Shown: piece by piece, positions 6,017 through 44,600 of the stretch
Layout of the letters: each line of letters begins with the position of its first letter
How positions within the stretch are numbered: position 1 is the first letter of the stretch
Origin: Geosiphon pyriformis uo1
Taxonomy: Eukaryota; Fungi; Glomeromycota
Assembly: GCA_016748015.1 (NCBI GenBank)
Contig: JAAOMT010000697.1
Coordinates: forward strand, 1,073,152 to 1,137,151
DNA length: 64,000 nt
Reading direction: 5' to 3'
Notes under the pieces: model-generated
The model's database searches: none
Told to the model about the DNA's origin: nothing
The model's input: the letters and a program-made list of their open reading frames with translations, nothing else
Program-made: the position numbers and the translations under genes

Positions 6017-9000
6017 TCCAGATTTCATAAGCTAGAATTGCTGATATCTAAATTGGTCAAGGCCTCATGTTCGGTTTCCAGTAATGATTTTGTTTCTTTG
6101 CTCAAGGTATAGAACAGACTCAATTCTACTGGTGCATTGACAGTAAAGTCCCTTTTACTTTTAGGTTTTAATTTTGATGTCATTCACTCTGCACTGGTCA
6201 AAGCAAAAAAGTTGTACTGCTCTTCTAAATTGTTGGAATCCAAACGTGCTGAGGAATCATCTATTAAGCAAGCCATTAATAAAAAAATGGAGAGTTTTGA
6301 GCTGGACAAAGACCATACCATCAAGAGTGTGTTAGAGTGTTCTTTCCACAAAGTGGTCTTAGATTATCTTGTTATGGGGGATAAGTTAATTTTGGAACCT
6401 GATTTGGTCAAGCCTAAGGTGGATAAGATCATGGAAGAGTGGACCAGAAAACACAGGGTGGTATTTGACATTTCCAATAATTGGGCCTGCCAATATTAGC
6501 CTCTAAATTACATGTTCAATGGTGCTTTTTCTGGGGTTATGTGTCCTATTGGTTTTGATAAGATGTCTGCCATTGTCAAGGAGCTTCCTGATGGGAAAGC
6601 TGCTGGACTTTCTGGCATCTCTAATGAATTGTGGAAACAATATGACAAGTCAGTTTTGGATATGCTTCTGGTGCTTTTGAACTTTTGTTTGGTTGGTGAA
6701 TCAGTTCTTGGACCTTGGAGGAAAGCTTGGGTCTCAATGATCCTGAAACCTTATGAATAAGAGAGAGTTCTCATGAACACCTGTCCTATTGTTTTGATCG
6801 AAATGGCCCACAAGATTTTTTCTAAGGTTCTTTCAGATAGAATTTCTTCAGCTTGCAGTATGTTTAATGTTCTTCATGGGAACAATTTTTCTGTTCTAAA
6901 AAATACGGTTTTTTGCTAATTTTGTTTTGAAAAAAGTGGTTTTAGATAAACAGTTTGCATATTTGGTGTCTGCTGTACTCTTTCCGATTGTCTGCTACAG
7001 GATGCAGTTCAGTTATGTTCCTTTAAGTGTGTGCAATAAGTGGGATGCCATGATTTACAAAGACTTGAAGTCTAAGACTGGCCTTCCATTCGACTTTTCC
7101 AATGATACACTCCATTATCTCTCTTTGTATAGTTTGAGAACTTTCGAACAAATTCAGGCTGAAAGCAAATTGGCTTCTGTTGGGTTATTGGGTCGCTTAT
7201 TCTTTCACAGGTCTCATGACCTTTAGGTTCTCAATTGGCATCCCCATCATCCTTTGCAATTTCCAGTTTGTATTAAGGTCTGTCCTATAAACAATTTTTT
7301 GGCTGGGGTGGCCCATATCCTTTTTGGATGTGATTTGTCTCTTGGTGGTTTTTTTCTTAGCACTTTTCGTTTTTGTGGTGGTTCTCCTATGTCTCTTGTT
7401 CTTGGTAAGCATTGCTTTTCCAAGTATGTTTTCTTACTCTGCCACTATAGTGTTGCTTTCATGGAGCAGTTACGTAACTGGGCCAGTGCTGTTTTTAGTT
7501 AGAATATCTTCAAGTACTAGAAAAGACTGGACTCCTATAGTCCAGTTCCTCTTTGGTTTGATCTCTTTGTACAATTTCTTGGTAGTGTTGTTTCTTCTTC
7601 TTCTGTTTGTCTTCTCTCCATGGATGGTCATGCTCTTTCTGATGTTCTTCAATCACACAATTTTGGTGTTGTTTGTGATGCTTTGCTAAACACTAATGCT
7701 GATGTTAGTCTTTCTGTGTATATGAATAGGTCTCTAAGTGGTTTGGGTACTGTTAGTATGAAGGCTGGTGCTGCTGCTTTTTTCAAGGACATTCATTTGG
7801 TTTTGGATGTAAGAGTTTCTGACATGGTTTCCTTAATGCTGGTAAAATTACAGGCTATTGCTTTGGCACTTGAGTGTATTCCTCTTTTTTGTTCAATTGA
7901 CTTATTCTTAGACAGCCAAGTGGCTTTGAATGCATATGAGTCTGAGTCTTTGTTAATTTGTCCTGATTTTAGGAATCAGTGCTGGATCAAGCATTGCCAC
8001 ATTACTGATGTTATTTGGAATAAGAATTTGAATATAAATTGGGTCAAAATTAAGAGTCATTCAGGTGTCTCAAGCAATGAGCAAGCTGATGCACTTGCTA
8101 AGGTGGCAGCTTCTTCTTCTTGGTGGCTACCTTATAGAATTGGTGAGCATTTTTTAAGAGATGGTGGTTCTGTGGTTTCTGGTAATTTGAGACACTTTGT
8201 TTGTGATGTTTTTTGGTCTGTTAACCAAATGCGTTGAAAGGTTGGCTCTGGTTCTCAAGTTGTGATTGGTGGTTTACGTGGTAATATTGATTGGTCCAAA
8301 TCTTCTTTGGTGTGACACTCCGATTTCCACATGGCTGTTGGTTCTACTAGTGCACAAATGGTTGGCCTTCGGACTTACTTTATGAAGGCTTTGCATCACC
8401 AACTCCCTGTGGTTATGTATAAGCATCTGTATGATAGACATTATCCCAGCATGGTGTGTTTATTCTGTGGTAATGTTAAGATTTCTGATCACATCTTTTT
8501 TTGCTCCTTTGATGCTGCTGGTTGTTCTCGTTTGATGAATACTTTTGCAGTGACTTGGAAAACCTGTTCTGGTTTATCTTATTCCTCTTCTTGTGTTTCG
8601 CAGTTGTTGTCTACTTGCGCATTTGACATTGCAACTGGTGCAGCTTTGTACAAGGGTTTTGTTTTCAGAGATTGGTATCAGGAATCTGTTTCCACTTTTA
8701 AGAACCCTAAGGTGGTGGCTACTAATATAGTGAACTTTGTGTGTGATTTTTGTATTGCATTCTGGGATGATATTTGGCTGGTCTATGTAAAACACCATGC
8801 TGTTATGGAGAGGAACGGGCTGATTTTACATGATGACTCCATTCCTGTCTCTGTTTCTGGTTTTTCTGAGTGTTTTTTGTCTGGTATTGTTAGATTGTTG
8901 GGAGTTGCTAAAGCGTTTGGCATTGGTTTCGGGTTTTGTAAGTCCTATTTGTTTTTCTCTGGTACTTGTAACAAGGTTTTGGTTCATATAGGTGTCTAGT

Positions 9001-15329: not shown

Positions 15330-16157
15330 TCAATTTTTTTCAATGGCCGGATCAAACTTTTTGGCCGTATCGATATTCTTATTATGTCGATCAATAACTT
15401 CGGCACGATACACCTCAGCCACATCATCCCCCACAAATCTTTTTAAATTACGATAAACTCGTCTTGCCTGTTCATGTTCTGCAGAATTTATTTGTTGTGG
15501 CCTAACAATGGTCATGGAACGAAGTTTATGCAATGTGGCATACATGTGATATCGACGCAGCAATTCCATCGCCTTATCAATCTCTTCGGGTGTGACGATA
15601 GGTGTTGTTTCCTGTTCGTTGATAAGTTCTTCCGGGTCTTGTTCGTGTGCTGTTAGCGGGGATTCAAGTTGTTCAGTGTGATCCGGTTCTGGACTGTTTC
15701 GTGTCGATTCTAGGGTGTCTGCATTATTATTGTGATTGTTATTTTGATGATTGAGTGAATTTTGTGGAACGTTTCTTGGGGAAGGTGATGACGCGTTATT
15801 GTGATTCCTTTTAGGCCTAGTGGTAGAATATGGTGCGGAAGTTGCTCGGGTGAAGTAATTATGTCGTAGATTTTTAGAACGAGGCGATTGTCTAACACGA
15901 CGCGTTTCTGCTATTGGCATCTCATTCTTATTGCTTCCAGCCGCAAATTCGTCTTCTTCCTCTTCTTCCCCCTCAATACCATCTTCGCTTTGATTATTAG
16001 CATCAGACAAGTTTTCTTCTTGATAAGACCCCTCTTCCTCCATGCCATCCTCTCCCTCTACTTCATACTCACTTTCTTCTTTAATTTCAATTTCTCCTTG
16101 ATTTACTTTAGTTTCTTCACTATTATCGATGCCGTTTTTTAATTTTATAACATTCAT
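15330..16157 (-). CDS. Hypothetical protein, 275 aa: acidic, disordered N-terminus and helical C-terminal region
   Basis: Long ATG-initiated ORF with gene-like GC and retained CpG; no family recognised. Confidence 0.75.
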   Translation of the reverse strand: MNVIKLKNGIDNSEETKVNQGEIEIKEESEYEVEGEDGMEEEGSYQEENLSDANNQSEDGIEGEEEEEDEFAAGSNKNEMPIAETRRVRQSPRSKNLRHNYFTRATSAPYSTTRPKRNHNNASSPSPRNVPQNSLNHQNNNHNNNADTLESTRNSPEPDHTEQLESPLTAHEQDPEELINEQETTPIVTPEEIDKAMELLRRYHMYATLHKLRSMTIVRPQQINSAEHEQARRVYRNLKRFVGDDVAEVYRAEVIDRHNKNIDTAKKFDPAIEKN

Positions 16158-19504: not shown

Positions 19505-21203
19505 TCCTCATCTATTTTTACAGTTAAATATAAATTAAATAAATTAATAATATTATTAAAGTGCTAACTGATTTCATTTAATCAGAACTTGAATTTATCG
19601 ATTTTGTACATACTGTGCATTTAATATTATTACCAATAAAACGCTAAATCCAACTCTGAAAAACGTTTTTATATTAAAAAAAAATCTCAATAATTGTATA
19701 AAAATAAATGAAAAGCTTATTATTTGTAGAAAATGTAAGTTTTGAGATTAATTGGCTTCTATATCTTGTTGTATCTCGGGTAGTATCTTGGGTCTCTTCG
19801 GAATTAAGTCTTTTTTCACGTACAAGTTCGTTTAAGTTGCAATTATCATGAACGGCAATAAATTTTTCTTGAAGTTCTTCTGCAGTATCACGGCAATATA
19901 GATTCTGATCCCAATTATTTTCAATCATTTCGTGAATACATAGATATGTATGCTTATTGATTATCAGGCGCTTTCCCTGAACTATGTCTAATTGAATGTA
20001 CATACTATTTTCAACATCATTCCATGGTCTTTCTCATGAAATAATTTTCCAGGAAATGATGGCAAAACTATAAATATCGCTAGATTTGGTATGCTTGGAA
20101 TTAGATGACAAGTTACAAATTTCGGGGGCGCTAGACATAGAACAACACCATAAATTTTGCCAGACTATGGAGCGTTCAAGATCAGAAATGATAACTCTCA
20201 AGTGTGTTGTTTTCAAAACAAGGATATTTTCAGGATGTAAGTCCCAATGCACCAGTTTTAAATCATGTATAATCCTTAGGCCACTAGCAATTTGAAAAAA
20301 CCATTTCCCAAGTAAAAGTATCATCATTCACTTTGAGAAAAGCTCTGAGGTCCCCGTGTTCCGCAAATGGTAAAACCATAATAAATTCATTGGTTTTAAC
20401 ATCTTTGGTTATTCCATAGTATTCAAGTATATATATTTTGCAAGAGACACTTCTAAGATGCACAATAAACTATTTCAATGCATTTTTTAGTATAAGGGAA
20501 GAAATAGTTATAACAAAAATCACATAGATTTCTTTAAAGGAAATACCTCATCTGAATTAATATAGTTTATATATTTGCTACCTGTAAGACATTTTAAAGC
20601 AACTTTCTTAAACCCAGTTCGTTCATATTTTTGATTTTTCTTATGCCAAAATAGAATTCTGTCTCTATCCCATCTACTTTCTTTAACAATACAAAATCTT
20701 CTCATTCCCACCTTATCTAAAAATTCAATATCATCGGGAGATTTCAGAAATGTACTGTGTACTATTTATATATATATCAATATTTTTATTTCTACTAACC
20801 CATGCTTCCCCAGTCTTTAAAAATCGTGATGATTCACAAGAGTGACACCAAAGTAATCTGTGATGGCATTTCTGGACATTTCAGCAAGCGTGTAAAGATA
20901 TAATCACAAAATGGAATTCGGGCAAGCCAACTTCAAAGATATTATCACTTTCGTCCATTTCATCAGTATCACGTTCGTCAATATATTCATTTCTTTAGTA
21001 TCACGTTCATCGGGAGATCTACTGATGATGATTATACCCAAGTTGCCAGATTTAAGACATTTGAATTCATCTGAAAGCTGGTTAAAGAAAGCTTCCAAAT
21101 CTAAAAATTCACCCTTTTGAATTATAAATATCGAATTTGAAATTGCAAAAATTAGACGCTCCAGTTCATATTTATCATCATTCTCAAGGGCATTCAAATG
21201 CAT
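19505..21203 (-). pseudogene. Kinase-only paralog of the Sel1-kinase gene, frameshifted and lacking the Sel1 array
   Basis: Fragments GEFLDLEAFFNQLSDEFKC, KVALKCL..INSDE, VHWDLHPENIL, APEIC, SDIYSFAII and RDTAEELQ match the 30845 gene. The same intron is retained after NSDE; multiple frameshifts. Confidence 0.92.
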
Positions 21204-25550: not shown

Positions 25551-26950
25551 ATGGGTCATAAAAATCTTTTAAAGAATTTCCATTTTAGATTAGAATATAT
25601 TCGAAATTCAAGATCTTGTAACCACCAACACCAACACCAACACCAACACCAACACCAACACCAACACAACCACAACCACAACCACAACTACCACCACAAA
25701 AATTTTTATATTTTTTATTTCAAATATATTTTTATTAGTAGTATAATTTTTTTATTTTTATTTTTATTTTTATTTTACCACGTTACAATTTCAAATATTT
25801 TTCAAGAGATTCATAAACTGAATGAGCAACCTATATCAAAAAAATCAAATTTTCAAATTTTAACAGTTAATAACACGGAACTTGTTCGATTCAATACCTC
25901 GACAAATATTATATCAATACCAAAAATTGAGAAAAAAAATTTAACTAAAAGAATATTTATAAAGGCGGACAGATTTCTAGTATCTGATCCAGAAATATTA
26001 AAATTTCTTAAAGCGATGGCTGGCTATGCAAGAAAAGCATATTGTAGAAGAGCTGATATTGGATATATAAAAGAAAAACAATTTAATGGTAATAAAGTTC
26101 AATTACAGGCACGTATTAATCTAAAAGTTCAAATGTTGAAATTGAAAGTTTACAAAAAAAAATATATATATTTTTTTTCCACAGCTGGTTTAACACGAAA
26201 TCCGGATAATCCAAACAACATCATCGTCTATATAAAAGGCGCACAACTTAGAAATTCTCTCCACTATTATCGTCGAAATTTTTGTCTATATACGCTTTAC
26301 AGCGAACAAGATTCAGGACTCGTTAATCAGATTTGGTATAGAAATTTTAAAAAAAAGGAGAATTCTTTGTTGAATATGATTAAAAATTTTATAAAGGATA
26401 AAGATTCTTATTCGATTGACTTTACCGGACACGGTCTGGGTGGTGGTGAGTTTTTAATTTTAAAAAAATGTTGATTTTGAAAGTTTGAAATTTTTTTTTT
26501 TTTTTTTTGATTTGAATTGTGTAAACTATTTATTGAAATTATAAAATCTATTTCAGTCCACGTAATGTTTTTAGCATTAGCCTACCGAAAATTATACCCA
26601 AAAGTTCAAATAAGAGTAGTCACATTCGGTACACCCCGTCCGGGTGATCAAGATTTTGCAAATTATTTTTCAACCCAAATTCCGAAACTCTTTCGAGTCA
26701 CAAATTATGATGATTTTGCACCACATCTTCCTCCAGCGAGTGTAAGAAAATATCGACATCCCCATACAGAGTATTGGATTTCCCAATATAGAAAATGTGA
26801 TAACTGTGATGAGGATTTGCCACCACTTGTAAAATGTTTAAAACGTCCGAGAAAAGCATGGAATCTTCGATTCGACTATGTGGAAGAGAATCCTGTGAGT
26901 ATTAAATTTTAGAAAATCAGAAATTTTTTTTGATTTGAAACTATTTAAAT

Positions 26951-29329: not shown

Positions 29330-30844
29330 TTGAATTAATTTCTGTTTATGTTTATATATATATATATTAAAACAGGAATTTATTTATTTTTTTTCCTATG
29401 GTTTTCATTTAAAGTGAAAAATTTTTTTTTTTTTTTTTCAGTTATGATAAAAGCTTTAAATTAGGAATTTTTTTTATCAATATAAATAATTTTAAAATAC
29501 GATTTATTGCAAATAATTTTACATTTTAATAATTAATTATTATAATCAATATTTATTATATAATAATAAATTTATAAAAAAATATATATATATATATAAA
29601 TTTCATTCTCTAAATATTTTTAAAAATTTAAAAATTTAATTACTATCTATTAAATCAATTAAATTTTAATTATTGTCAATTAATTCAAATTAAATTTTTA
29701 TTTTTAATAAAATTTTTAAGTAAAAAATTTACAATTATTAAAAATGTTTACAGTTTAAAAATAAAATTCTATTATAAAAGTTTTTTTTGTAATAAATATA
29801 TATATATATATTTTTATTAATTTCATCTAGTATTGTTCTTAATTTATTTATCTATTTTCTTTAAAAGTAAAAAATAAATAAATAAATAAATTCAAATTTT
29901 GATAATTTTTAACTAATTTTAATTAAATTATATATATATATCTTAATAATTCAATTTTAAAAATAGTTGATTTTTTTTTAAATCCTAATAATTCTAATTA
30001 TAACATAATTATTAATTATTTCATCGATAAAGATTTCAGAAATATTGATTCAATAAATTTTTTAAACAAAAAATAATTGTGTTTGTTTTTCAGTAAAAAT
30101 TAATACATAAATGAATTTATTAATTTCTAAAACACTCGTCAAATAATTTTTTTTATAAATTTTTGAAATTATGTCTGTTTCTAAATTTTTATCAATAGAC
30201 TAAAAAAATTTCATGATTTTTTTTACAAGTGTGAAACGTGTTTTTGAGAAATACCTTTAAAATACAACAAAAACAATTTTTTGATTTTATGAAAATTTGT
30301 CTTCATTTGATAAAGTGATTGATTTAGAACTGATAATGTAAAGTTAAAAAGGATAAAACAGATGATAATCAAATATCTTAGATTCTTCATTGAAACTAAT
30401 TGTTGGAGTTCAAGGAAAAAGGTAGATATGAAAGCAGAGGCTTGAAATAAATTAATTGTCAAAATCAAAGATAAAAATTTAATCAAGTGAGAACCTTAAT
30501 TCTTGTACTTTTTCTGGATTTGGTATTAAAAATACAATTTTTGGAAGCGGCTATGGGGTTTAGATAAGACAATCTGCTGAGAAATTTATCAATGAGCTAT
30601 TGAAACCAATCAACTCGTTGTAAAAAAAACTCCCCAATCAAAGTGTTAGGTTTTCATTTAGCATTCTTACGCCAAACGATCTCTATCTGTTTAAGCAAGC
30701 CTCTATTTTCAGAACTTTTTACCGTTTCAGATTTCTTCAAGGCCTAGCCTTTTCGGGAATGTGATTATAGATTGAAATCCTTATTTATTAACAAAGACGA
30801 ACTCTTTAAAAATCTTTCTTTACCCACACAAAAATATTCAAATC

Positions 30845-33800
30845 ATGTCTTTAACTTCATCAATTGAAAACACAGTTTCACCCCTCGGTTTGCTTGAAGG
30901 AGCATTGATTGTCATAAAAGAAAATTTGCCCATTTTCTCAGCTAGTAAATATTCAAAAGTTGCTAACTTGATGAAAATATATCTTGAGCACAATCAGAAA
31001 ACACCTAAAGACTTATTCAATTACTTGAATAATAGAAGTTCAAAGCATTCGATAGACCATATTTTACTCGGCTTTTTTTTAGAACATGGGATTGGAACTA
31101 TTCCTAATTTAAGAAAAGCATTTCTAGAATTTCAGAAAGGAGCGAATGCAAAAGATTCTCTTGGCCAATTCTTCTTAGGACGTTGTTATGATAATGGAAT
31201 TGGTACTTTGCAAGATCGAAGAAAAGCATTTGAACTCTATTCAAAAGCTGCAGAGGCGGGTGATATAAATGCACAATTCAATCTTGGATTGCGTTATGAA
31301 AATGGATTGGAAACGACGAAAAATGAAGAAAAAGCATTTGAACTCTATTCAAAAGCTACAGAGGCGGGACATTTAGATGCACAATACCATCTTGCGTGGT
31401 GTTATGATTATGGATTGGGAACGACGGAAAATTCAGAAAAAGCATTTGAACTCTATTCAAAAGCTGCAGAGGCGGGAAATTTAGATGCAAAATATCATCT
31501 TGCATGGTGTTATGATAATGGAGAAGGAACGACAATAAATTCAGAAAAAGAATTTGAACTTTATTTAAAAGCTGTAGAGGCTGGAGATGCTGATGGAGAA
31601 GGAACGACGAAAAATTCAGACAAAGTATTTGAACTCTATTCAAAAGCTGCACAATACAATCTTGCACTTTGTTATGCTAATGGAGAAGGAACGACGAAAA
31701 ATGAAGAAAAAGCATTTGAACTTTTTTCAAAAGCTACAGAGGCGGGACATTTAGATGCACAATACCATCTTGCATTGTGTTATGATAATGGATTGAGAAC
31801 GACGAAAAATTCAGAAAAAGCATTTGAACTCTATTCAAAAGCTGCAGAGGCGGGATTTTTAGATGCACAATATCATCTTGCATGGTGTTATGATAATGGA
31901 GAAGGAACGACAAAAAATTCAGAAAAAGCATTTGAACTCTACTCAAAAGCTGCAGAGGCGGGATTTTTAGATGCACAATACAATCTTGCACTTTGTTATG
32001 CTAAAGGAGAAGGAACAACGAAAAATTCAGAAAAAGCATTTGAACTCTATTCAAAAGCTGCAGAGGCGGGAAATTTAGATGCACAATTCAATCTCGCAGT
32101 TTGTTATGATAATGGAGAAGGAACGACAAAAAATTCAGAAACAGCATTCGAACTCTATTCAAAAGCTGCAGAGGCGGGACATGTAAATACACAATACCAT
32201 CTTGCATGTTGTTATGATAATGGAGAAGGAACGACAAAAAATTCAGAAAAAGCATTTGAACTCTACTCAAAAGCTACAGAGGCGGGACATGTAGTTGCAC
32301 AATGCAATCTTGCATGGTGTTATGAAAATGGATTGGGAACGACGAAAAATTCAGAAAAAGCATTTGAACTTTATTTAAAAGCTATAGAGGCCGGAGATGC
32401 TGATGGAGAAGGAACGACGAAAAATTCAGAAAAAGCATTTGAACTCTATTCAAAAGCTGCACAATACAATCTTGCACTTTGTTATGCTAATGGAGAAGGA
32501 ACGACGAAAAATGAAGAAAAAGCATTTGAACTCTATTCAAAAGCTACAGAGGCGGGACATTTAGATGCACAATACCATCTTGCATGGTGTTATGATAATG
32601 GATTGGGAACGACGAAAAATGAAGAAAAAGCATTTGAACTCTATTCAAAAGCTGCAGAGGCGGGACATGTAAATGCACAATATCATCTTGCATGGTGTTA
32701 TGATAATGGAGAAGGAACGACAAAAAATTCAGAAAAAGCATTTGAACTCTATTCAAAAGCTACAGAGGCGGGACATTTAGATGCACAATACAATCTTGCA
32801 CTTTGTTATGCTAAAGGAGAAGGAACAACGAAAAATTCAGAAAAAGCATTTGAACTCTATTCAAAAGCTGCAGAGGCGGGAAATTTAGATGCACAATTCA
32901 ATCTCGCAGTTTGTTATGATAATGGAGAAGGAACGACAAAAAATTCAGAAAAAGCATTCGAACTCTATTCAAAAACTGCAGAGGCGGGACATTCAGATGG
33001 ACAATACAATCTGGCAGTTTGTTATGATATTGGAAGGGGAACGACAAAAAATCCAGAAAAAGCATTTGAACTCTATTCAGAAGCAGCAGAGGCAGGAAGT
33101 TTACTTGGACAAATCGCTCTTAGAGATTATTATCGATTGGAAGATCCGGAAAAAGTGGGAAATCCTAGCACACAAACAAGTATTGAAACGTACTGTCGAA
33201 ATGGATGGGAAATAGTGAAAAATCTGGAAGAAACGTTTCAATTCTTTTTAAAAACAGCAGAGGCGGGAAATCAAAATGCACAATATAACCTTGGATGGTG
33301 TTATCAAAGTGGATGGGGAACCACAAAAAACCTAGAAAAAGCCTTTGAACTCTATTTAAAAGCAGCAGGAGCAAATAACTTATGTTTTCAAAGTGATTTT
33401 CCTGATTTGAATGTCCATGACCTTACTTTAGTGGATCAAAACAATCTGGAATATAACCTTTTACGATTTCAAAATCAGGGCTTTATATATTCAGATGATT
33501 TCAACGGAGAATTTTTAGATTTTGAAGCTTTCTTTGACCAGCTTTCAGATGAATTCAAATGTTTTAAATGTGGCAACTTGGGTATAATCATCATTAATAG
33601 ATCTATTATATGTCCATTTTGTGACACTGATAAAAGTGATGATATCATTAAAGGAGGGTTGCCGAAATGTCTAGAATGCGATAGAACATTAAAAGATCCA
33701 CTTTGGTGTCAATCTTGTGAATATCCACGATTATTAAACATTCGTGGAATATGGAGTAGCGGAAATAATAATGTTGATCATTATATACGATATACACAGT

Positions 33801-35081
33801 GGAAGTCTGAAAACTGCAGAGCATGTCTAGAATGGATTTCACCCGATGAGATTGAATTTTTGAATAAAGTGGGAGAGGGAGGATTTGGCGTTGTTAAAAA
33901 AGGTAGTTGGGAGAGAGGCAGAATTCTATTTTGGGAAATGAAAACTCAAAAGTATGAACGAACTGGGGTTACAAAGGTTGCTTTGAAGTATCTTAAAGAT
34001 AGTCAGAATATAAAATTTATTAATTCAGATGAGGTATTTCCTTTTAAGAAATTTATGTGATTTTTATTGTTCTAATTTCTTTTTCTAACACTAGAAAATC
34101 ATTGAAATAGTTTCTTGCGCATCTTAAAAGTGCCTCTTGCAAATACATCCTTGAATGCTATGGAATAACCAAAGATGTTACAACCGATGAATTTGTTATG
34201 GTATTACCATTTGCGGAACACGGGGACCTCAGAGCTTTTCTCATGTTGAACAAAGATATTCTTAATTGGGACATGTTTCTTCGTATTCTTTTTCAAATCG
34301 CTGGTGGCCTAAGATTTATACATGACTCAAAACTGGTTCATGGGGACTTGCATCCTGGAAATATCCTTGCTTTGAAAACAACACCCTTAAAAGTTGTCAT
34401 TTCTGATCTTGGACTCTGTCGTCCTGCGGATGACACTCCACAGTCTGGAAAAATTTATGGTGTTCTTGAGTATCTTGCGCCAGAAATTTGCAAAGGTGGT
34501 TCTCATACTAAGTATAGCGATATATACAGCTTTGCTATCATTTCATGTGAAATTATATCGGGAGAAAGACCTTATAATAATATAGATCCTATTCACGTGC
34601 TACTTGATGTGATTAAGGGAAAGCGTCCTACAATCAAGAAACATACACCTCAATGTATTCAGGAAATAATTGAAAAAAATTGGCAATATGATCCGTCTTG
34701 TCGTGATAGTGCTGAAGAACTTCAACAAAGAGTTATTGCTGCTCGCGATAATTGTCATTTAAATGAACTCGTCCGTGAGAAAAGACTTAGTTCTGAAGAC
34801 ATAAAAGGTGCTCAACATGATGCAACAAGATATAAAAGTCAATTAATCTCAAACTTTACATGTTCAATGAGTGGTAAGACTTTCATTTATCATATTTAAT
34901 GTTTAAGAATTTTTCTGATTTAAGCGTCTTTTTTCCAGATCTGGATTGTTCTACTAGCATTAGTCATACGAATAAAGACACACTTGACCAAATCAGTAAG
35001 CACTTTCAATTTATTTTAAAAATGATATTAATTGTTTTTTATCAATATTTAACTATAAAATGGTTTGAAATAGATGAATAA
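30845..35081 (+). CDS. Protein with about 20 Sel1-like repeats, a Cys-rich linker and a tyrosine-kinase-like kinase; exons 30845-34033, 34111-34873, 34939-34995, 35074-35081
   Basis: 36-aa repeats AQYxLAxCYxNGEGTTKNSEKAFELYSKAAEAG; CFKC/CPFC/CLEC/CQSC; GEGGFGVV, VALK, HGDLHPGN, DLG, YLAPE, SDIYSF; in-frame GT-AG introns. Confidence 0.93.
31180..33370 (+). repeat. 108-bp coding tandem repeat array (Sel1) containing an 810-bp higher-order duplication
   Basis: Recurrent aaaagcatttgaactctattcaaaagctgcagaggcggga. The aberrant unit gctgatggagaagga occurs at about 31589 and about 32399. Confidence 0.95.
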
Positions 35082-35238
35082 TTTGAACGAAGAATTGGTT
35101 GTTTATAAAAATTATTATATATGGTTTTATTAGTAAAGGCAATTTAAAACGCATTTATTTAATTCAGGATTTTGTGGGTTGAGAATATTTTAGGCAAAAA
35201 ATTTTGGACTCAATGTCTTAGCTTAGACTTTGTTTTGC

Positions 35239-35347
35239 TAGATAGTGTCATCTTGATTGGCTTGGATGGCTGGCCACATGTAGAAAGTGCATGAGCTGCG
35301 TTTATTGTAGAACATGTATAAGTTTTGTGTGTACATAGATAGTGTCA
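35239..35347 (+). mobile_element. Short fragment of the LINE-type 3' end
   Basis: tcttgattggcttggatggctggccacatgtag resembles tcttgactggtttgagtggctggtcacgtgtag at about 9006-9038; bracketed by the direct repeat TAGATAGTGTCA. Confidence 0.65.
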
Positions 35348-37176
35348 GTTTTTCTGAAAAAAATTTTCGTTTTTGATGAAATTAGTTATATAAATAAATT
35401 TTATGAATAATATCAAAAAATTCTTTACTCTAAAAAGAATCTAATAGTAATTTTTTGGTTATGAAAATAAAATAAAAAAGTTATATATTTATTTTTGATA
35501 ATGTCATAATAATTAGTTGACTGCTAAAAGGTTTTATTAAACAATATTATTGAATTAAAAATTCTTATCCGGATTTAATGCGTGTTGGTGCAATAATTTG
35601 TTTTTTTATTATAAAATTTATATGTAAAACTTGAAATATTCTCATAAAATCAGTTTAACTCAAATTTTGAATAGTTTGTAAAATCTTTAACCTAATTTTT
35701 TTAATCTTTTTTTAACTATTGCAAATTAAAAGTTTCTAAAACTGTAAACAAATAAAGTTTCAACAAAAATAAAAATAAAAAAAGTCAAGAATAAAAGTAA
35801 ATATAAATATATATTAAAGAATAAAGTAAAAAATTATATTAATATATATTATAGGTCATATTATAAATAGAAAAGATATATGATTATCTAATTTAAAAAT
35901 AACATAATTGTATAATTAAGAAATAAAAATAAATGAACTGTAAAATAAAATATTAATAAAATAATTAAAAAAATTACTTTAGAATAATATATATTTTTAA
36001 TTTGTTAGATTCTTAAAAATTTAACAATTTATGATTAAGATATTTTTCCCAAACCTATAGATTTAAAAATAGATTTATAAATATAATAGAGTTTTTTTTT
36101 GGATTTTAGATTCTTTTCATTTAAAATTATAACTTTTTTTTGTTATATTAAAATTAAAATTAAAAAATTTATATTTTTTTTGGTGTTATATTTTTTTCAA
36201 ACTATTTTAACAACAATCATATGTTATTTTTAATTTAAAATTTTTTTAACTCTAAAATTCAATATTTTATTATATATTTTATCAATATAATAATTATGTA
36301 AATAAATACCTTAAACATTTTCCCAATTATAAAATTAAACTATAAAAGCAAATAAATATGAAATTCTTCTTGGTTTTTATTATTTAATTTAAAATTATGT
36401 TAGTTAATCTTTGATTATTTAATATTTAATTATTCAATAGTTATTTCAACTCAAAGTTTCAAAATCTTTTATATAAAGACAAGAACTCACAGGAAAAATA
36501 GCAGAATTTATTAATTTCAACAAAAATTATACATAATACTGTGATAATCTTAAACAAGAATGATTTGCTGTAAAACTTCAAAGTCTTAAGGCTTAAAAAA
36601 TTATAAATTTTGAATTAGCCTTTAATTTTGACTGAATCACATTTTATGGATTCATCTCTTCATATTTCAGTACTTAGATATTAATACACTGGTGAAAATT
36701 ACATTATAGGTTTCAATATACTCAATTTCTTTGAGTAAATTTTACTGATTTTTTAAATATCTCTACTCAATAAAGTAATGCTGAATGCATCAAATTTTAT
36801 AATGGATTTAAAGCGTTTATACTTCAAAAATATATAACTTCAAGGCAAAGATATACAGGAATTAATTTTTGTAATTTAGATTTTATCTAACATATTCAAA
36901 TATCAACCGATATAAAATTTTAAACAAAATATTTGCCAAGTGAAATACAAAGATGATAATTTTGAAAATTTTAATTTAATGTGAATATCAAGGTAATATC
37001 GAGGTTTGGAATTTTCTTTAAAACAAAATCATGGGAATAACTAATTAATTAAATTGGTTTATCGACTCGCTGTAAACTTTATGCAAAGGAAATGTTATTA
37101 AATTTGTTATTACTGAACTGGCTAGACCATCTGTAATGTTAGGATTAGATTATACATTTAGAAAATTTATCATATT

Positions 37177-37510
37177 CAGCCTTTTTACGCCTTTTGCACT
37201 TTTACCCGTTTAAGCAATGTAAATGAGGGAATGAAATGGGCGTCTATTTTCAGCGTTTCAGATTTCTTTAAGGTCTAGCCTTTTCGGGAATGTGATTATA
37301 GGTTAAAAAAGAACCATCTGCAATCTTGGGAACTAGATTGTAGATTTAGGAAATTTATCAGTGAGCTATTGACAATAACAGCCTTTTTACGCCTTTGGAT
37401 TCCAAAAAATCTTTACCCGTTTAAACAATGTACGAAATAGGCGTCTATTTTCAGAACTTTCTAGCGTTTCAAGGTCAAGGCTTTTCGGGAATTTGATTAT
37501 AGGTTAAAAT
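37177..37510 (+). promoter_or_regulatory. Tandemly duplicated upstream segment (about 200-bp period), homologous to the upstream region of the 30845 gene
   Basis: cagcctttttacgccttt, tttacccgtttaa, gcgtctattttcag and cttttcgggaatntgattataggttaaaa each occur twice; related motifs at 30580-30790. Regulatory role is inferred from position only. Confidence 0.6.
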
Positions 37511-37596
37511 CCTTATTTATTAGCAAGATTAAATACTTCTTTACCCATCCAAAATATTGGAGGTTTAATAATTCATTTGTGTTGCTACAAAAAATC

Positions 37597-39633
37597 ATGT
37601 CTTCAACTTCATCAATTGAAAACGCAACTTCATCCTTCGAATGGCTTGAAGGAGCATTAATTGTCATCAAAGAAAATTTGGCCATTTTTTCAGCTAGTGA
37701 ATATTCAAAAGTTGCTGACTTGGTGAAAAAATATGTTGAGTGCAATCAGAAAAAACCTGAAGACTTCTTCAATTGCTTAAATAATAAAAGTTCAAAGCGT
37801 TCGATAGACTATATCTTGCTCGGCTTTTCTTTAGAACATGGGATTGGAACTATTCCTAATTTAAAAAGAGCATTTTTAGAATTTCGAAAAGCAGCGAATG
37901 CAGACAACTCTTTTGGACAATTCTTCTTAGGACGTTGCTATTATAATGGAATCGGTACTAAACAAGATCGAGAAAAAGCATTTGAACTTTATTTAAAAGC
38001 GGCAGAGGCGGGAGATTCAGATGCTGAATATAGCCTTGCAGTTTGTTATGATAATGGAGAAGGAACAATGAAAAATTCTGAAAAAGCATTCGAACTTTAT
38101 TCAAAAGCAGCAGAGGCGGGACATACAATGGCACAACTCAATCTTGCACTTTGTTATTTATATGGAAGGGGGACAACAAAAAATTCTGAAAAAGCATTTC
38201 AACTTTATTCAAAAGCAGCAGAGGCGGGACATACAACGGCACAATTTAATCTTGCACTTTGTCATGCTAATGGAAAAGGAACAACGAAAAATTCAGAAAA
38301 AGCATTTCAACTTTATTCAAAAGCAACAGAGGCGGGACATACACTGGCACAATACAATCTTGCAGTTTGTTATGATAATGGAGAAGGAACAACAAAAAAT
38401 TCTGAAAAAGCATTTCAACTTTATTTAAAAGCAGCAGAGGCGGGACATACAACGGCACAATACAATCTTGCAAATTGTTATTTAAATGGAGAAGGAACAA
38501 CAAAAAATTCAGAAAAAGCATTTGAACGGTTTTCAAAAGCAGCAGAGGCAGGACATACAAAAGCACAATTAAATCTTGCAGCTTGTTATCTTAATGGAGA
38601 AGGAACGAAGAAAAATTCTGAAAAAGCATTTCAACTTTATTCAAAAGCAGCAAAGGCGGGAAACACAACGGCACAATACAATCTTGCACTTTTTTATCGA
38701 AATGGATGGGGAATAAGAAAAAATTTAGAAAAAGCATTTGAACTTTTTTCAAAAGCAGCGGGGGCGGGAGATTTAAATGCACAATTTAATCTCGCAGCTT
38801 GTTATCAGAATGGAGAAGGAACAACAAAAAATTCAGAAAAAGCATTTGAACTTTATTCCAAAGCAGCAAAGGCGGGAGATTTAAAAGCACAATTAAATCT
38901 TGCAGCTTGTTATGCTAATGGAGAAGGAACGACTAAAAATTCAGAAAAAGTATTTGAACTTTATTCCAAAGCAGCAAAGGCGGGAGATTTAAATGCACAA
39001 TTCAATCTTGCCCTTTGTTATGTCAATGGAATAGGAACGACGAAAAATTTAGCAAAAGCCTTTGAACTTTTTTCAAAAGCAGCAGAGGCGGGACATACAA
39101 TAGCACAATACAATCTTGCAGTTTGTTATGCTAGTGGAAGGGGAACAACGAAAAATTCAGAAAAAGCCTTTGAACTTTATTCAAAAGCAGCAGAGGCGGG
39201 ACATACACTGGCACAACACGATCTTGCACTTTGTTATTTAGATGGAGAAGGAACAACAAAAAATTCAGAAAAAGCATTTGAACTTTTTTCAAAAGCAGCA
39301 GAGGCAGGACATAAAACGGCACAATTCAATCTCGCAGCTTTTTATGCTAATGGAGAAGGAACGACGAAAAATTTAGAAAAAGCATTTGAACTTTTTTCAA
39401 AAGCAGCGGGGGCGGGAGATGTAAATGCACAATACTATCTTGCAAATTGTTATGCTAATGGAGAAGGAACGACGAAAAATTTAGAAAAAGCATTCAAACT
39501 TTATTCAAAAGCAGCAGAGGCGGGACATACACTGGCACTACACGATCTTGCACTTTGTTATTTATATGGAAGGGGAACAACAAAAAATGAGAAAAAAGCA
39601 TTCGAAATGGATGGAAAACTGCGAAAAATCTAG
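37597..39633 (+). CDS. Sel1-repeat-only paralog (about 17 repeats, 678 aa from the ATG), truncated before the linker and kinase
   Basis: N-terminus MSSTSSIENATS is paralogous to MSLTSSIENTVS; uninterrupted ORF ending in a frameshifted tail (EMDGKLRKI). Confidence 0.88.
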   Translation: MSSTSSIENATSSFEWLEGALIVIKENLAIFSASEYSKVADLVKKYVECNQKKPEDFFNCLNNKSSKRSIDYILLGFSLEHGIGTIPNLKRAFLEFRKAANADNSFGQFFLGRCYYNGIGTKQDREKAFELYLKAAEAGDSDAEYSLAVCYDNGEGTMKNSEKAFELYSKAAEAGHTMAQLNLALCYLYGRGTTKNSEKAFQLYSKAAEAGHTTAQFNLALCHANGKGTTKNSEKAFQLYSKATEAGHTLAQYNLAVCYDNGEGTTKNSEKAFQLYLKAAEAGHTTAQYNLANCYLNGEGTTKNSEKAFERFSKAAEAGHTKAQLNLAACYLNGEGTKKNSEKAFQLYSKAAKAGNTTAQYNLALFYRNGWGIRKNLEKAFELFSKAAGAGDLNAQFNLAACYQNGEGTTKNSEKAFELYSKAAKAGDLKAQLNLAACYANGEGTTKNSEKVFELYSKAAKAGDLNAQFNLALCYVNGIGTTKNLAKAFELFSKAAEAGHTIAQYNLAVCYASGRGTTKNSEKAFELYSKAAEAGHTLAQHDLALCYLDGEGTTKNSEKAFELFSKAAEAGHKTAQFNLAAFYANGEGTTKNLEKAFELFSKAAGAGDVNAQYYLANCYANGEGTTKNLEKAFKLYSKAAEAGHTLALHDLALCYLYGRGTTKNEKKAFEMDGKLRKI

Positions 39634-42740: not shown

Positions 42741-44025
42741 GCATTTTAGGGGCAACAAAAGTTATAAATATATAAATTAAATTATTATTATTACAAATTT
42801 TAATGTACAAGAATTAGCAAAGGATAGTATATATATTTTTATGAGGTCCAAAAATTATCCATAGAATAAGTTAATAATAATATTTTATATGTAATCTTAA
42901 TTATATCAATAAAAAATGTTTAAAAAAGAATAAATTGTATTCAAAAAAAATAATTATTAATTTTTTGAAGAACTTGAATTAAATCTTGATAAATTACATA
43001 TTTAATATTTTAAAATATTTAAATAAATATAAGAAAGGTTTTAATTTATATTTTAAATATTATAATATAATAATATAATAAAATTTAATTAAAATATAAT
43101 CACTTATAAAAAAGAATTAATCAAGATAATAATTAGTAATCAGTTTTATTTTTTGAATTTTTTATTATTTGTGCCAAATTAAAATTAAAATTAAAATTAA
43201 TTGTTTTTTATATAACAACAGTTTTAAAAAGCAATATTTTTATTAAAAAGCTTGATTTAATTTAAAATAAAAATGTTATTTATAAACTTTAATTATAAAA
43301 TCAAAACAGAAAAGTTAAAACCAATTTCTTTTAAAATTATATTGTTTTTCATATTAAACATATAGAATCAAATTAAGATATTAATATAATTAATAAGTTT
43401 ATCTTTTTTTAAATTAAGTTAACATTAAAATTAATTAAGTTTAAACGAAATTATGTTTAGAAATTCTTGATAAAATCTAATTAATGGAATCAACAATCAG
43501 ACTCATGAATTAATTTATCATTTATAATTTTATAAAAATATATAAATTTTTTTATTTCATAATGGTAAATTGGAATTGAAAGAAAAAAATTAATTTGAGA
43601 AAAAGAGTAACGAAAAGAAGTAGCAACAATATTTATAAAAAAATTGTTGCAGAATATTAATAAAACTCTTTAAATAGGTATTTTTACATGAAAATATTTA
43701 AAATTATACTTTTTAGTTCGATAAATTAGATATTGTTAGATTAAGTCAACAAATAAACAATAAAATATCAAACTCAAAAATAATCACAATAAACAGAGAG
43801 AATATTGTTTTTTTTTTAAGTGTAAATAGAACACTATATAATTAATATAATTTATCAATTAAGAGTTATTTAAAATATATCTTTTATGAAAAAATCAATA
43901 AACTAATAAAAATTAAGATTATTAGAGTTTATTATTATTATTATCACAAATAAAAATAATAGATAACGATTAGATCATTTGATTTATAAAACTTCATATA
44001 TTTTTTATTCTTTTTTAACTTTGTT

Positions 44026-44600
<575 letters not shown>

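Follow-up and report, generated by a model that had tools for sequence, protein, structure and literature searches.

Do the two Sel1-repeat genes that lie in tandem on the forward strand at positions 30845-39633 of a 64,000-nucleotide (nt) stretch of Geosiphon pyriformis DNA (contig JAAOMT010000697.1, positions 1,073,152-1,137,151; the whole stretch is hereafter called the window) encode diversifying receptors for non-self, as an earlier note, made on the letters alone, had proposed? Our results give a qualified answer, i.e. that the first of them, gene 1, is on balance probably a cytosolic sensor kinase made of a single chain, which repeat shuffling and selection have diversified, and a candidate for non-self recognition. 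The analyses reveal the domain architecture, the shuffling of the repeat units, in-register changes in unit number and, in two species, an excess of amino acid replacements at groove sites of the repeats, with no mutational hot spot at these sites.

Selection at the variable repeat positions

The arrays of gene 1 (31154-33376) and gene 2 (37906-39600) consist of two-helix units of 108 nt, or 36 amino acids (aa), of which 18 and 16, respectively, are well-formed. The earlier note correctly described two paralogous arrays; its figure of about 37 repeats is reached only when half-units and degenerate units are counted, and its description of a scaffold almost invariant at the DNA level is not borne out. 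Scaffold identity is 87% in aa and 90% in nt, with a proportion of synonymous differences (pS) of 0.13-0.20, and whole units in the two arrays have mean identities of 78% and 73% in aa and of 87% and 83% in nt. In the 28 complete internal units of the window, entropy peaks at positions -1, 7, 10, -2, 13, 3, -3, 4 and 11; these nine positions, 25% of the unit, account for 62% of the pairwise residue differences, as the note had anticipated, although its list needs amendment in that positions 4, 11 and 13 do not change faster than silent sites in both species and that position 19 varies too. Units at other loci (33 arrays with 291 unique units) have a similar variability profile (Spearman 0.74); there, position 19 is likewise variable and position 11 less so. 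The residue sets of the two paralogues differ as described (HLD..YH..W in one, HTx..xN..A/N in the other), and 331 units hold 262 distinct nine-site combinations.

The nine sites were fixed from the window and then tested out of sample on the 291 units of the other arrays; the ratio of nonsynonymous to synonymous rates (omega, dN/dS) of 2.4 obtained from the window only is circular, the sites having been chosen there, and was not relied on. At codon positions 1 and 2 of the nine sites, diversity exceeds that of fourfold-degenerate scaffold sites 1.64-fold between arrays (95% site bootstrap 1.03-2.79) and 2.06-fold within arrays (1.39-3.12), and transversions are in excess by a factor of about 3.1. 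A maximum likelihood codon model gives an omega of 1.58 for the nine sites, compared with 0.43 for the scaffold (likelihood-ratio test (LRT) statistic 59.6); the former becomes 1.74 when the nine sites have their own silent rate and 1.49 with AT-rich equilibrium frequencies. Considered site by site in Geosiphon, positions -1, 7 and 10 change at about 2.5 times the silent rate and position 3 at 1.6 times, with no excess at positions 4 and 11.

The same regime is apparent in Diversispora epigaea, in which 56 or more proteins have Sel1, CxxC and kinase in this order and share a scaffold of their own, unlike that of Geosiphon. The variable positions of the two species agree (Spearman 0.80), with the exceptions that position 13 is fixed and position 11 more variable in Diversispora. 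For 93 Diversispora units of DNA, omega at the nine sites is 1.37 compared with 0.24 for the scaffold (LRT 10.3), led by positions -1, 10, 3 and 7; in both species the rate at sites -1, 7 and 10 is 2-2.8 times that of silent change. The dN/dS check that the note had suggested for the variable sites thus gives values above 1 out of sample in both species for the nine sites taken together.

A control on mutation is provided by a twin of gene 2 on another contig (locus L019, G000:C534, ~63.2-66.5 kb, minus strand), which has diverged by 3% in flanks and coding sequence alike. The pair differs at 3 of 80 variable codons compared with 24 of 230 scaffold codons, so that mutation is not concentrated at the variable codons, and the fourfold sites lying between them are not raised (0.05-0.21). 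CpG or regional hypermutation was rejected as the cause of the variability: CpG lifts silent scaffold sites rather than variable codons, fourfold sites interleaved with these codons have low values, and no enrichment is seen in the twin. Programmed DNA diversification likewise found no support, given the low interleaved fourfold sites and the unenriched twin; donor cassettes were not seen near the genes. Because neither the variable codons nor the fourfold sites among them show a mutational excess, the diversity is that of ordinary mutation and recombination, filtered by selection.

Several points weigh against the reading of gene 1 as a diversified sensor. Omega is only moderate, and its estimate varies with the tree, being 0.95 on a tree of the variable sites and 3.15 on a tree of the scaffold; codon models take no account of multi-nucleotide mutation or of biased conversion; and the excess over the silent rate in both species is limited to positions -1, 7, 10 and 3. 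The tree-free ratio for Diversispora is 1.71, with an interval (0.98-3.16) that touches 1. Many copies are broken, and the non-repeat parts have omegas of 0.35-0.63 (cap 0.63, linker 0.61, kinase lobes 0.46 and 0.35), such that constraint is purifying but loose. The non-RD catalytic loop (one without the arginine-aspartate pair; HGDLHPGN) of the gene 1 kinase is absent from most Diversispora members (41 HRDL, 13 HRDI and 16 others). Furthermore, variable groove positions are a general feature of TPRs, such that their location favours a role in binding without being special to gene 1.

The last point bears on how the structural results are to be read. The entropy of helix A is directed to one face, as the note had claimed (permutation p = 0.0005 in the window and 0.001 at other loci). 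An AlphaFold (AF2) model of 8.5 units (predicted local distance difference test score 76.8; one good model of five) resembles solved Sel1 solenoids (Foldseek template-modelling scores 0.78-0.81 to 8SXQ and 6OK3), and in a consensus alignment positions -3, -2, -1, 3, 4, 7, 10 and 11 correspond to TPR positions 34, 1, 2, 5, 6, 9, 12 and 13. Across all TPRs, variability is highest at positions 2, 5, 9, 12, 13, 33 and 34, which form the lining of the concave ligand face (PMC1261162). By this consensus register, the sites with a selection signal (-1, 3, 7 and 10, i.e. TPR 2, 5, 9 and 12) would lie on the concave face. Since the helix-face pattern is general to TPR-like repeats (PMC1261162), it is less telling than the note took it to be; the real evidence is the selection signal, not the location.

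The selection signal has itself to be weighed against relaxed or neutral turnover, by which a transposon-like, repeat-rich family would have had its unconstrained, exposed groove sites scrambled by conversion. The many pseudogenes are what such turnover would leave, as are the location of Rhizophagus Sel1 and kinase genes in methylated non-core regions (PMC8647823), the scaffold omega of 0.43 and the omegas near 1 at Geosiphon positions 4, 11, 13, -2 and -3. As the omega estimate is tree-dependent, it was calibrated by simulation. In 30 neutral simulations, with and without segment shuffling, omega on the all-site tree was 0.78-1.18, in every case below the observed 1.58; in 15 further neutral runs the ranges were 0.55-0.83 (variable-site tree), 1.14-1.53 (scaffold tree) and 0.91-1.31 (tree-free), all of which are exceeded by the observed 0.95, 3.15 and 1.65, respectively. 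The observed statistics thus lie above all 45 neutral simulations, and neutrality is further disfavoured by the rates at -1, 7 and 10 in two species, by the conservation of exposed helix-B positions and by silent change that shows no local rise. We consider neutral turnover distinctly unlikely.

Repeat shuffling and the gene family

The proposal that the Sel1 units are shuffled is upheld. Units are mosaic, in that incompatibility between sites grows with the distance between them (p = 0.03 and 0.002), and their number changes by duplication and by insertion or deletion. Within gene 1 a recent duplication (31552-32992) has left two copies, at ~31552-32182 and 32362-32992, which are offset by 810 nt and 97% identical, with a half-unit in each (31586 and 32396); at 8 of the 11 codons that differ, both copies have codons present in other gene 1 units, a pattern such as short gene conversions would leave. 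Gene 2 and its twin, which are paralogues and not alleles, differ by exactly 756 nt, or seven units, the twin having fewer.

The gene 2 truncation described below, the 810-nt duplication within gene 1 and the arrays themselves might in principle be products of short-read mis-assembly. Near-identical repeats are hard for short reads and need long ones (PMC13449251), and none of the short Logan contigs from two samples spans an array. Exact contigs of 105-172 nt at a depth of 65-86, the single-copy level, do, however, run across the junction at the first half-unit and through the unique parts; the truncation is repeated in the independent twin, and the site pattern in the 33 other arrays and in a second species. 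An assembly artefact is hardly credible in the light of these results.

The best twenty protein matches are all Sel1-kinases of G. pyriformis, with identities of 37-79%. The N-terminal cap is matched at 150 or more places in the assembly (150 of 1067 candidates being scored) and the linker region at 154, and many of these copies have stops. Arrays at the loci examined contain anything between a few units and 26 or more. One Geosiphon family member, P0018 (1315 aa), has about 550 additional residues C-terminal to the kinase. Another Geosiphon protein, P0023, is kinase-first and combines a kinase from another clade with Sel1 units of the Geosiphon scaffold; in this instance the repeats seem to have been homogenised or exchanged between different kinase families.

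Both domain orders, Sel1-first and kinase-first, are present among the matches, and two Rhizophagus proteins have the Sel1, CxxC, kinase order. In a quick kinase tree with long branches, the Geosiphon and Diversispora sequences each form a well-supported clade of their own, joined with an SH-aLRT (a likelihood-ratio branch test) value of 89; a single origin of the Sel1-kinase fusion in the two genera is, on such sequence comparisons, neither shown nor excluded.

Architecture of the two genes

Gene 1 extends from 30845 to ~34.9 kb on the plus strand. Its first exon (30845-34033; 1063 open codons) begins with the cap (30845-31153; ~103 aa, with a degenerate Sel1 unit at its end), followed by the array, in which the 18 well-formed units are accompanied by two half-units and by a degenerate stretch ahead of the last unit. 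The linker (33377-33850) has four CxxC motifs (33560, 33611, 33668 and 33707) and a W-x-S-G-N motif; it matches no Pfam family, and the clusters with it are all from Mucoromycota. The exon ends with the N-lobe of a kinase (33851-34033; GxGxFG at 33872, VALK at 33977). The open reading frame (ORF) 30845-34060 does not mark where the protein ends, the kinase being split by a predicted intron of 77 nt (34034-34110; GT..AG, phase 0), across which point the predicted paralogue proteins are continuous; one sequencing run, probably of DNA, contains no splice joint. The second exon (34111-34873) encodes the C-lobe, with HGDLHPGN at 34339, DLG at 34405 and APE at 34477, and is followed by a probable second intron (34874-34938). 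The kinase belongs to the tyrosine-kinase-like (TKL) group (PF07714), and its catalytic motifs are all present (GEGGFG, VALK, HGDLHPGN, DLG, APE), such that it is intact-looking as judged by motifs. In Pfam searches, in which the spliced gene 1 model was searched exon by exon, PF08238 matched 17 stretches of gene 1 (663 bits) and 16 of gene 2 (569 bits).

Gene 2 (37597-39633, plus strand) has an open frame of 678 aa comprising a cap 75% identical to that of gene 1 and the 16 Sel1 units. The frame ends at an out-of-frame junction, beyond which 33 nt are left of the penultimate, degenerate unit (39601-39633, equivalent to 33195-33228 of gene 1), followed by a stop, and a tblastn search located neither linker nor kinase downstream. 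The proposed wiring of Sel1 repeats to a kinase therefore holds for gene 1, the kinase motifs being present, and fails for gene 2, which we read as a kinase-less derivative, i.e. a possible decoy, an adaptor or a young pseudogene. The twin of gene 2, which has an identical truncated end, is a pseudogene. The changes between the two consist chiefly of G>A and C>T and lie mainly on the twin side (~15 of 18 scaffold replacements). This bias might have pointed to selection that kept gene 2 open after the kinase loss, but most silent changes are also on the twin, which has therefore simply mutated more, as would a copy in a region of higher mutability, perhaps a methylated one.

A non-coding stretch upstream of each gene (30700-30845 and 37240-37597) is common to both and to many paralogues (~79-87%), with part of it present twice ahead of gene 2; it is likely a common promoter. 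A third, broken family member on the minus strand (19680-21200) retains a linker and a kinase, both interrupted by frameshifts, and within the window it is not preceded by any Sel1 array.

As regards the NOD-less character ascribed to the receptor, a Pfam search identified neither NACHT nor NB-ARC in the proteins of gene 1 or gene 2, in agreement with the note. For the Geosiphon genome as a whole, Pfam NACHT and NB-ARC gave zero matches at E <= 0.001, although introns or divergence could hide some. This blank and the non-RD loop, which the Geosiphon kinases have in general, are side observations that fit a receptor function but do not prove it.

Proposed mechanism and relation to known systems

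In the mechanism that we propose for gene 1, the Sel1 repeats would form a TPR-like superhelix, the concave groove of which is lined by positions -1, 3, 4, 7, 10 and 11 of each unit. The groove may bind a protein or peptide, and ligand binding could either activate the kinase or deliver it to a substrate, including the bound target itself. The selecting agent would be non-self, whether a bacterial or plant partner, a parasite or a different individual of the fungus. In a birth-and-death family of at least 100 copies, unequal crossing-over and short gene conversions would maintain the similarity of the scaffold within a species and rearrange the units, and selection for new groove residues would give each gene a different binding surface. 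The proposals of binding, of activation and of a non-self ligand draw on an evolutionary regime known in fungi mainly from NOD-like receptors (NLRs; NOD being the nucleotide-binding oligomerization domain) with high internal conservation (PMC4986451, PMC13449251), to which gene 1 would be comparable by analogy.

In these NLRs (HET-E/HET-D with WD40 repeats; Podospora TPR and ANK NLRs; PMC4986451, PMC13449251), as in the family described here, near-identical repeats are gained, lost and shuffled, a few hypervariable concave-face positions are under diversifying selection, and genes turn over rapidly. The differences are that gene 1 is without NACHT or NB-ARC, that its Sel1 repeats are N-terminal and its TKL kinase output C-terminal, and that internal identity is lower (mean 73-78% in aa). 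Measured as identity of at least 85% over at least 100 aa (PMC4986451), gene 1 has 97% at an offset of 270 and 87% at an offset of 36, and gene 2 has 82%; both genes exceed 0.7 mean identity, in a measure that approximates the T-REKS threshold of PMC13449251 without being identical to it. Gene 1 lacks the STAND domain by which NLRs are defined and so is not an NLR, but it evolves as they do. Surveys did not find NLRs in the early-branching fungi sampled, among which Glomeromycota were not included (PMC4986451).

The groove may alternatively have been diversified for proteins of the fungus itself, with paralogues docking different endogenous partners or substrates in ordinary signalling. Hypervariability of the groove is usual in TPR-like families with many ligands (PMC1261162), omega is only ~1.5, and kinase and Sel1 expansions are general across Glomeromycotina (PMC8647823, PMC9453076), all of which would suit such a role. 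Constant reshuffling of units and high gene death would, however, wreck fixed endogenous contacts, and the same regime in fungi has so far been tied mainly to NLR-type receptors (PMC4986451, PMC13449251). We rate endogenous ligands as unlikely, though with a real chance of being correct; were they the ligands, the family would still illustrate well how repeat proteins evolve in concert.

Geosiphon hosts cyanobacteria, and the Sel1 groove might instead aim the kinase, as a weapon or effector, at proteins of the partner or of an endobacterium, in the way that bacterial Sel1 proteins act on hosts. The nearest solved structures are indeed of bacterial Sel1 proteins, e.g. Legionella LceB and LpnE, and Helicobacter Sel1-like genes are positively selected (PMC1941758). 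The structural likeness is, however, one of fold only. The Helicobacter Hcp/slr proteins share with the Geosiphon family the Sel1 fold and positively selected surface residues (PMC1941758), but are secreted and bacterial, with diverged repeats and no kinase. Hydropathy indicates neither a signal peptide nor a transmembrane (TM) helix in the gene 1 and gene 2 proteins, and the family, being present in Diversispora as well, is not tied to the Nostoc symbiosis. An effector role is, in our view, very unlikely, and we retain the sensor kinase as the preferred reading of gene 1.

Other comparisons bear on that reading. Plant non-RD immune kinases (FLS2, EFR, XA21; PMC3411088) likewise combine a solenoid sensor with a kinase that has Gly or Cys before the catalytic Asp; these are transmembrane receptors with leucine-rich repeats (LRRs), whereas gene 1 has no TM segment and most of its Diversispora relatives are RD. 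A further system resembles the Sel1-kinases in that its repeats are shuffled, its concave face is under diversifying selection, its genes undergo birth and death and some members have kinases; there each repeat is an exon of its own, whereas the entire gene 1 array is contained in a single exon, with shuffling by recombination in register, and the LRR-kinases of that system are without shuffling. The Sel1 and TKL expansions reported in Glomeromycotina (PMC8647823, PMC9453076) concern the same domains in the same lineage at high copy number. Those papers count domains, whereas the subfamily considered here is defined by Sel1 repeats, then a CxxC linker, then a kinase; kinase-Sel1 proteins have been classed as MLKL-like (PMC8778642). 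None of the open papers searched reports scaffolds homogenised throughout a species, groove-restricted selection or a receptor role for Sel1-kinases. New here are the second species, the twin as a control, the kinase loss of gene 2 and the NACHT/NB-ARC blank.

An immune-receptor-like signature in two distant Glomeromycota provides a concrete candidate family, with named residues (-1, 3, 7 and 10), for the means by which mycorrhizal fungi, coenocytic symbionts with thousands of Sel1 and kinase domains, separate partner from parasite and self from non-self. It may be, though we suggest this tentatively and with more doubt than attaches to gene 1 itself, that Glomeromycota use NOD-less Sel1-kinases as their main variable non-self repertoire. 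Such a repertoire, which would have expanded in Geosiphon and in Diversispora separately and in which kinase-less copies would act as decoys or adaptors, would screen partners, whether bacterial, plant or conspecific, within a shared cytoplasm.

Other features of the window

Elsewhere in the window, an ORF on the plus strand (25551-26474) has a weak Lipase_3 match just above the cut-off, and a 275-aa ORF on the minus strand (15330-16157) has only a weak, sub-cut-off match to the Spore_III_AA-like P-loop ATPase family. A TTA microsatellite of 190 copies (44025-44596) gives rise to three spurious ORFs. An RNase H match on the plus strand (7620-8237) is probably part of a decayed retroelement (~6.1-9.0 kb) of higher GC content.

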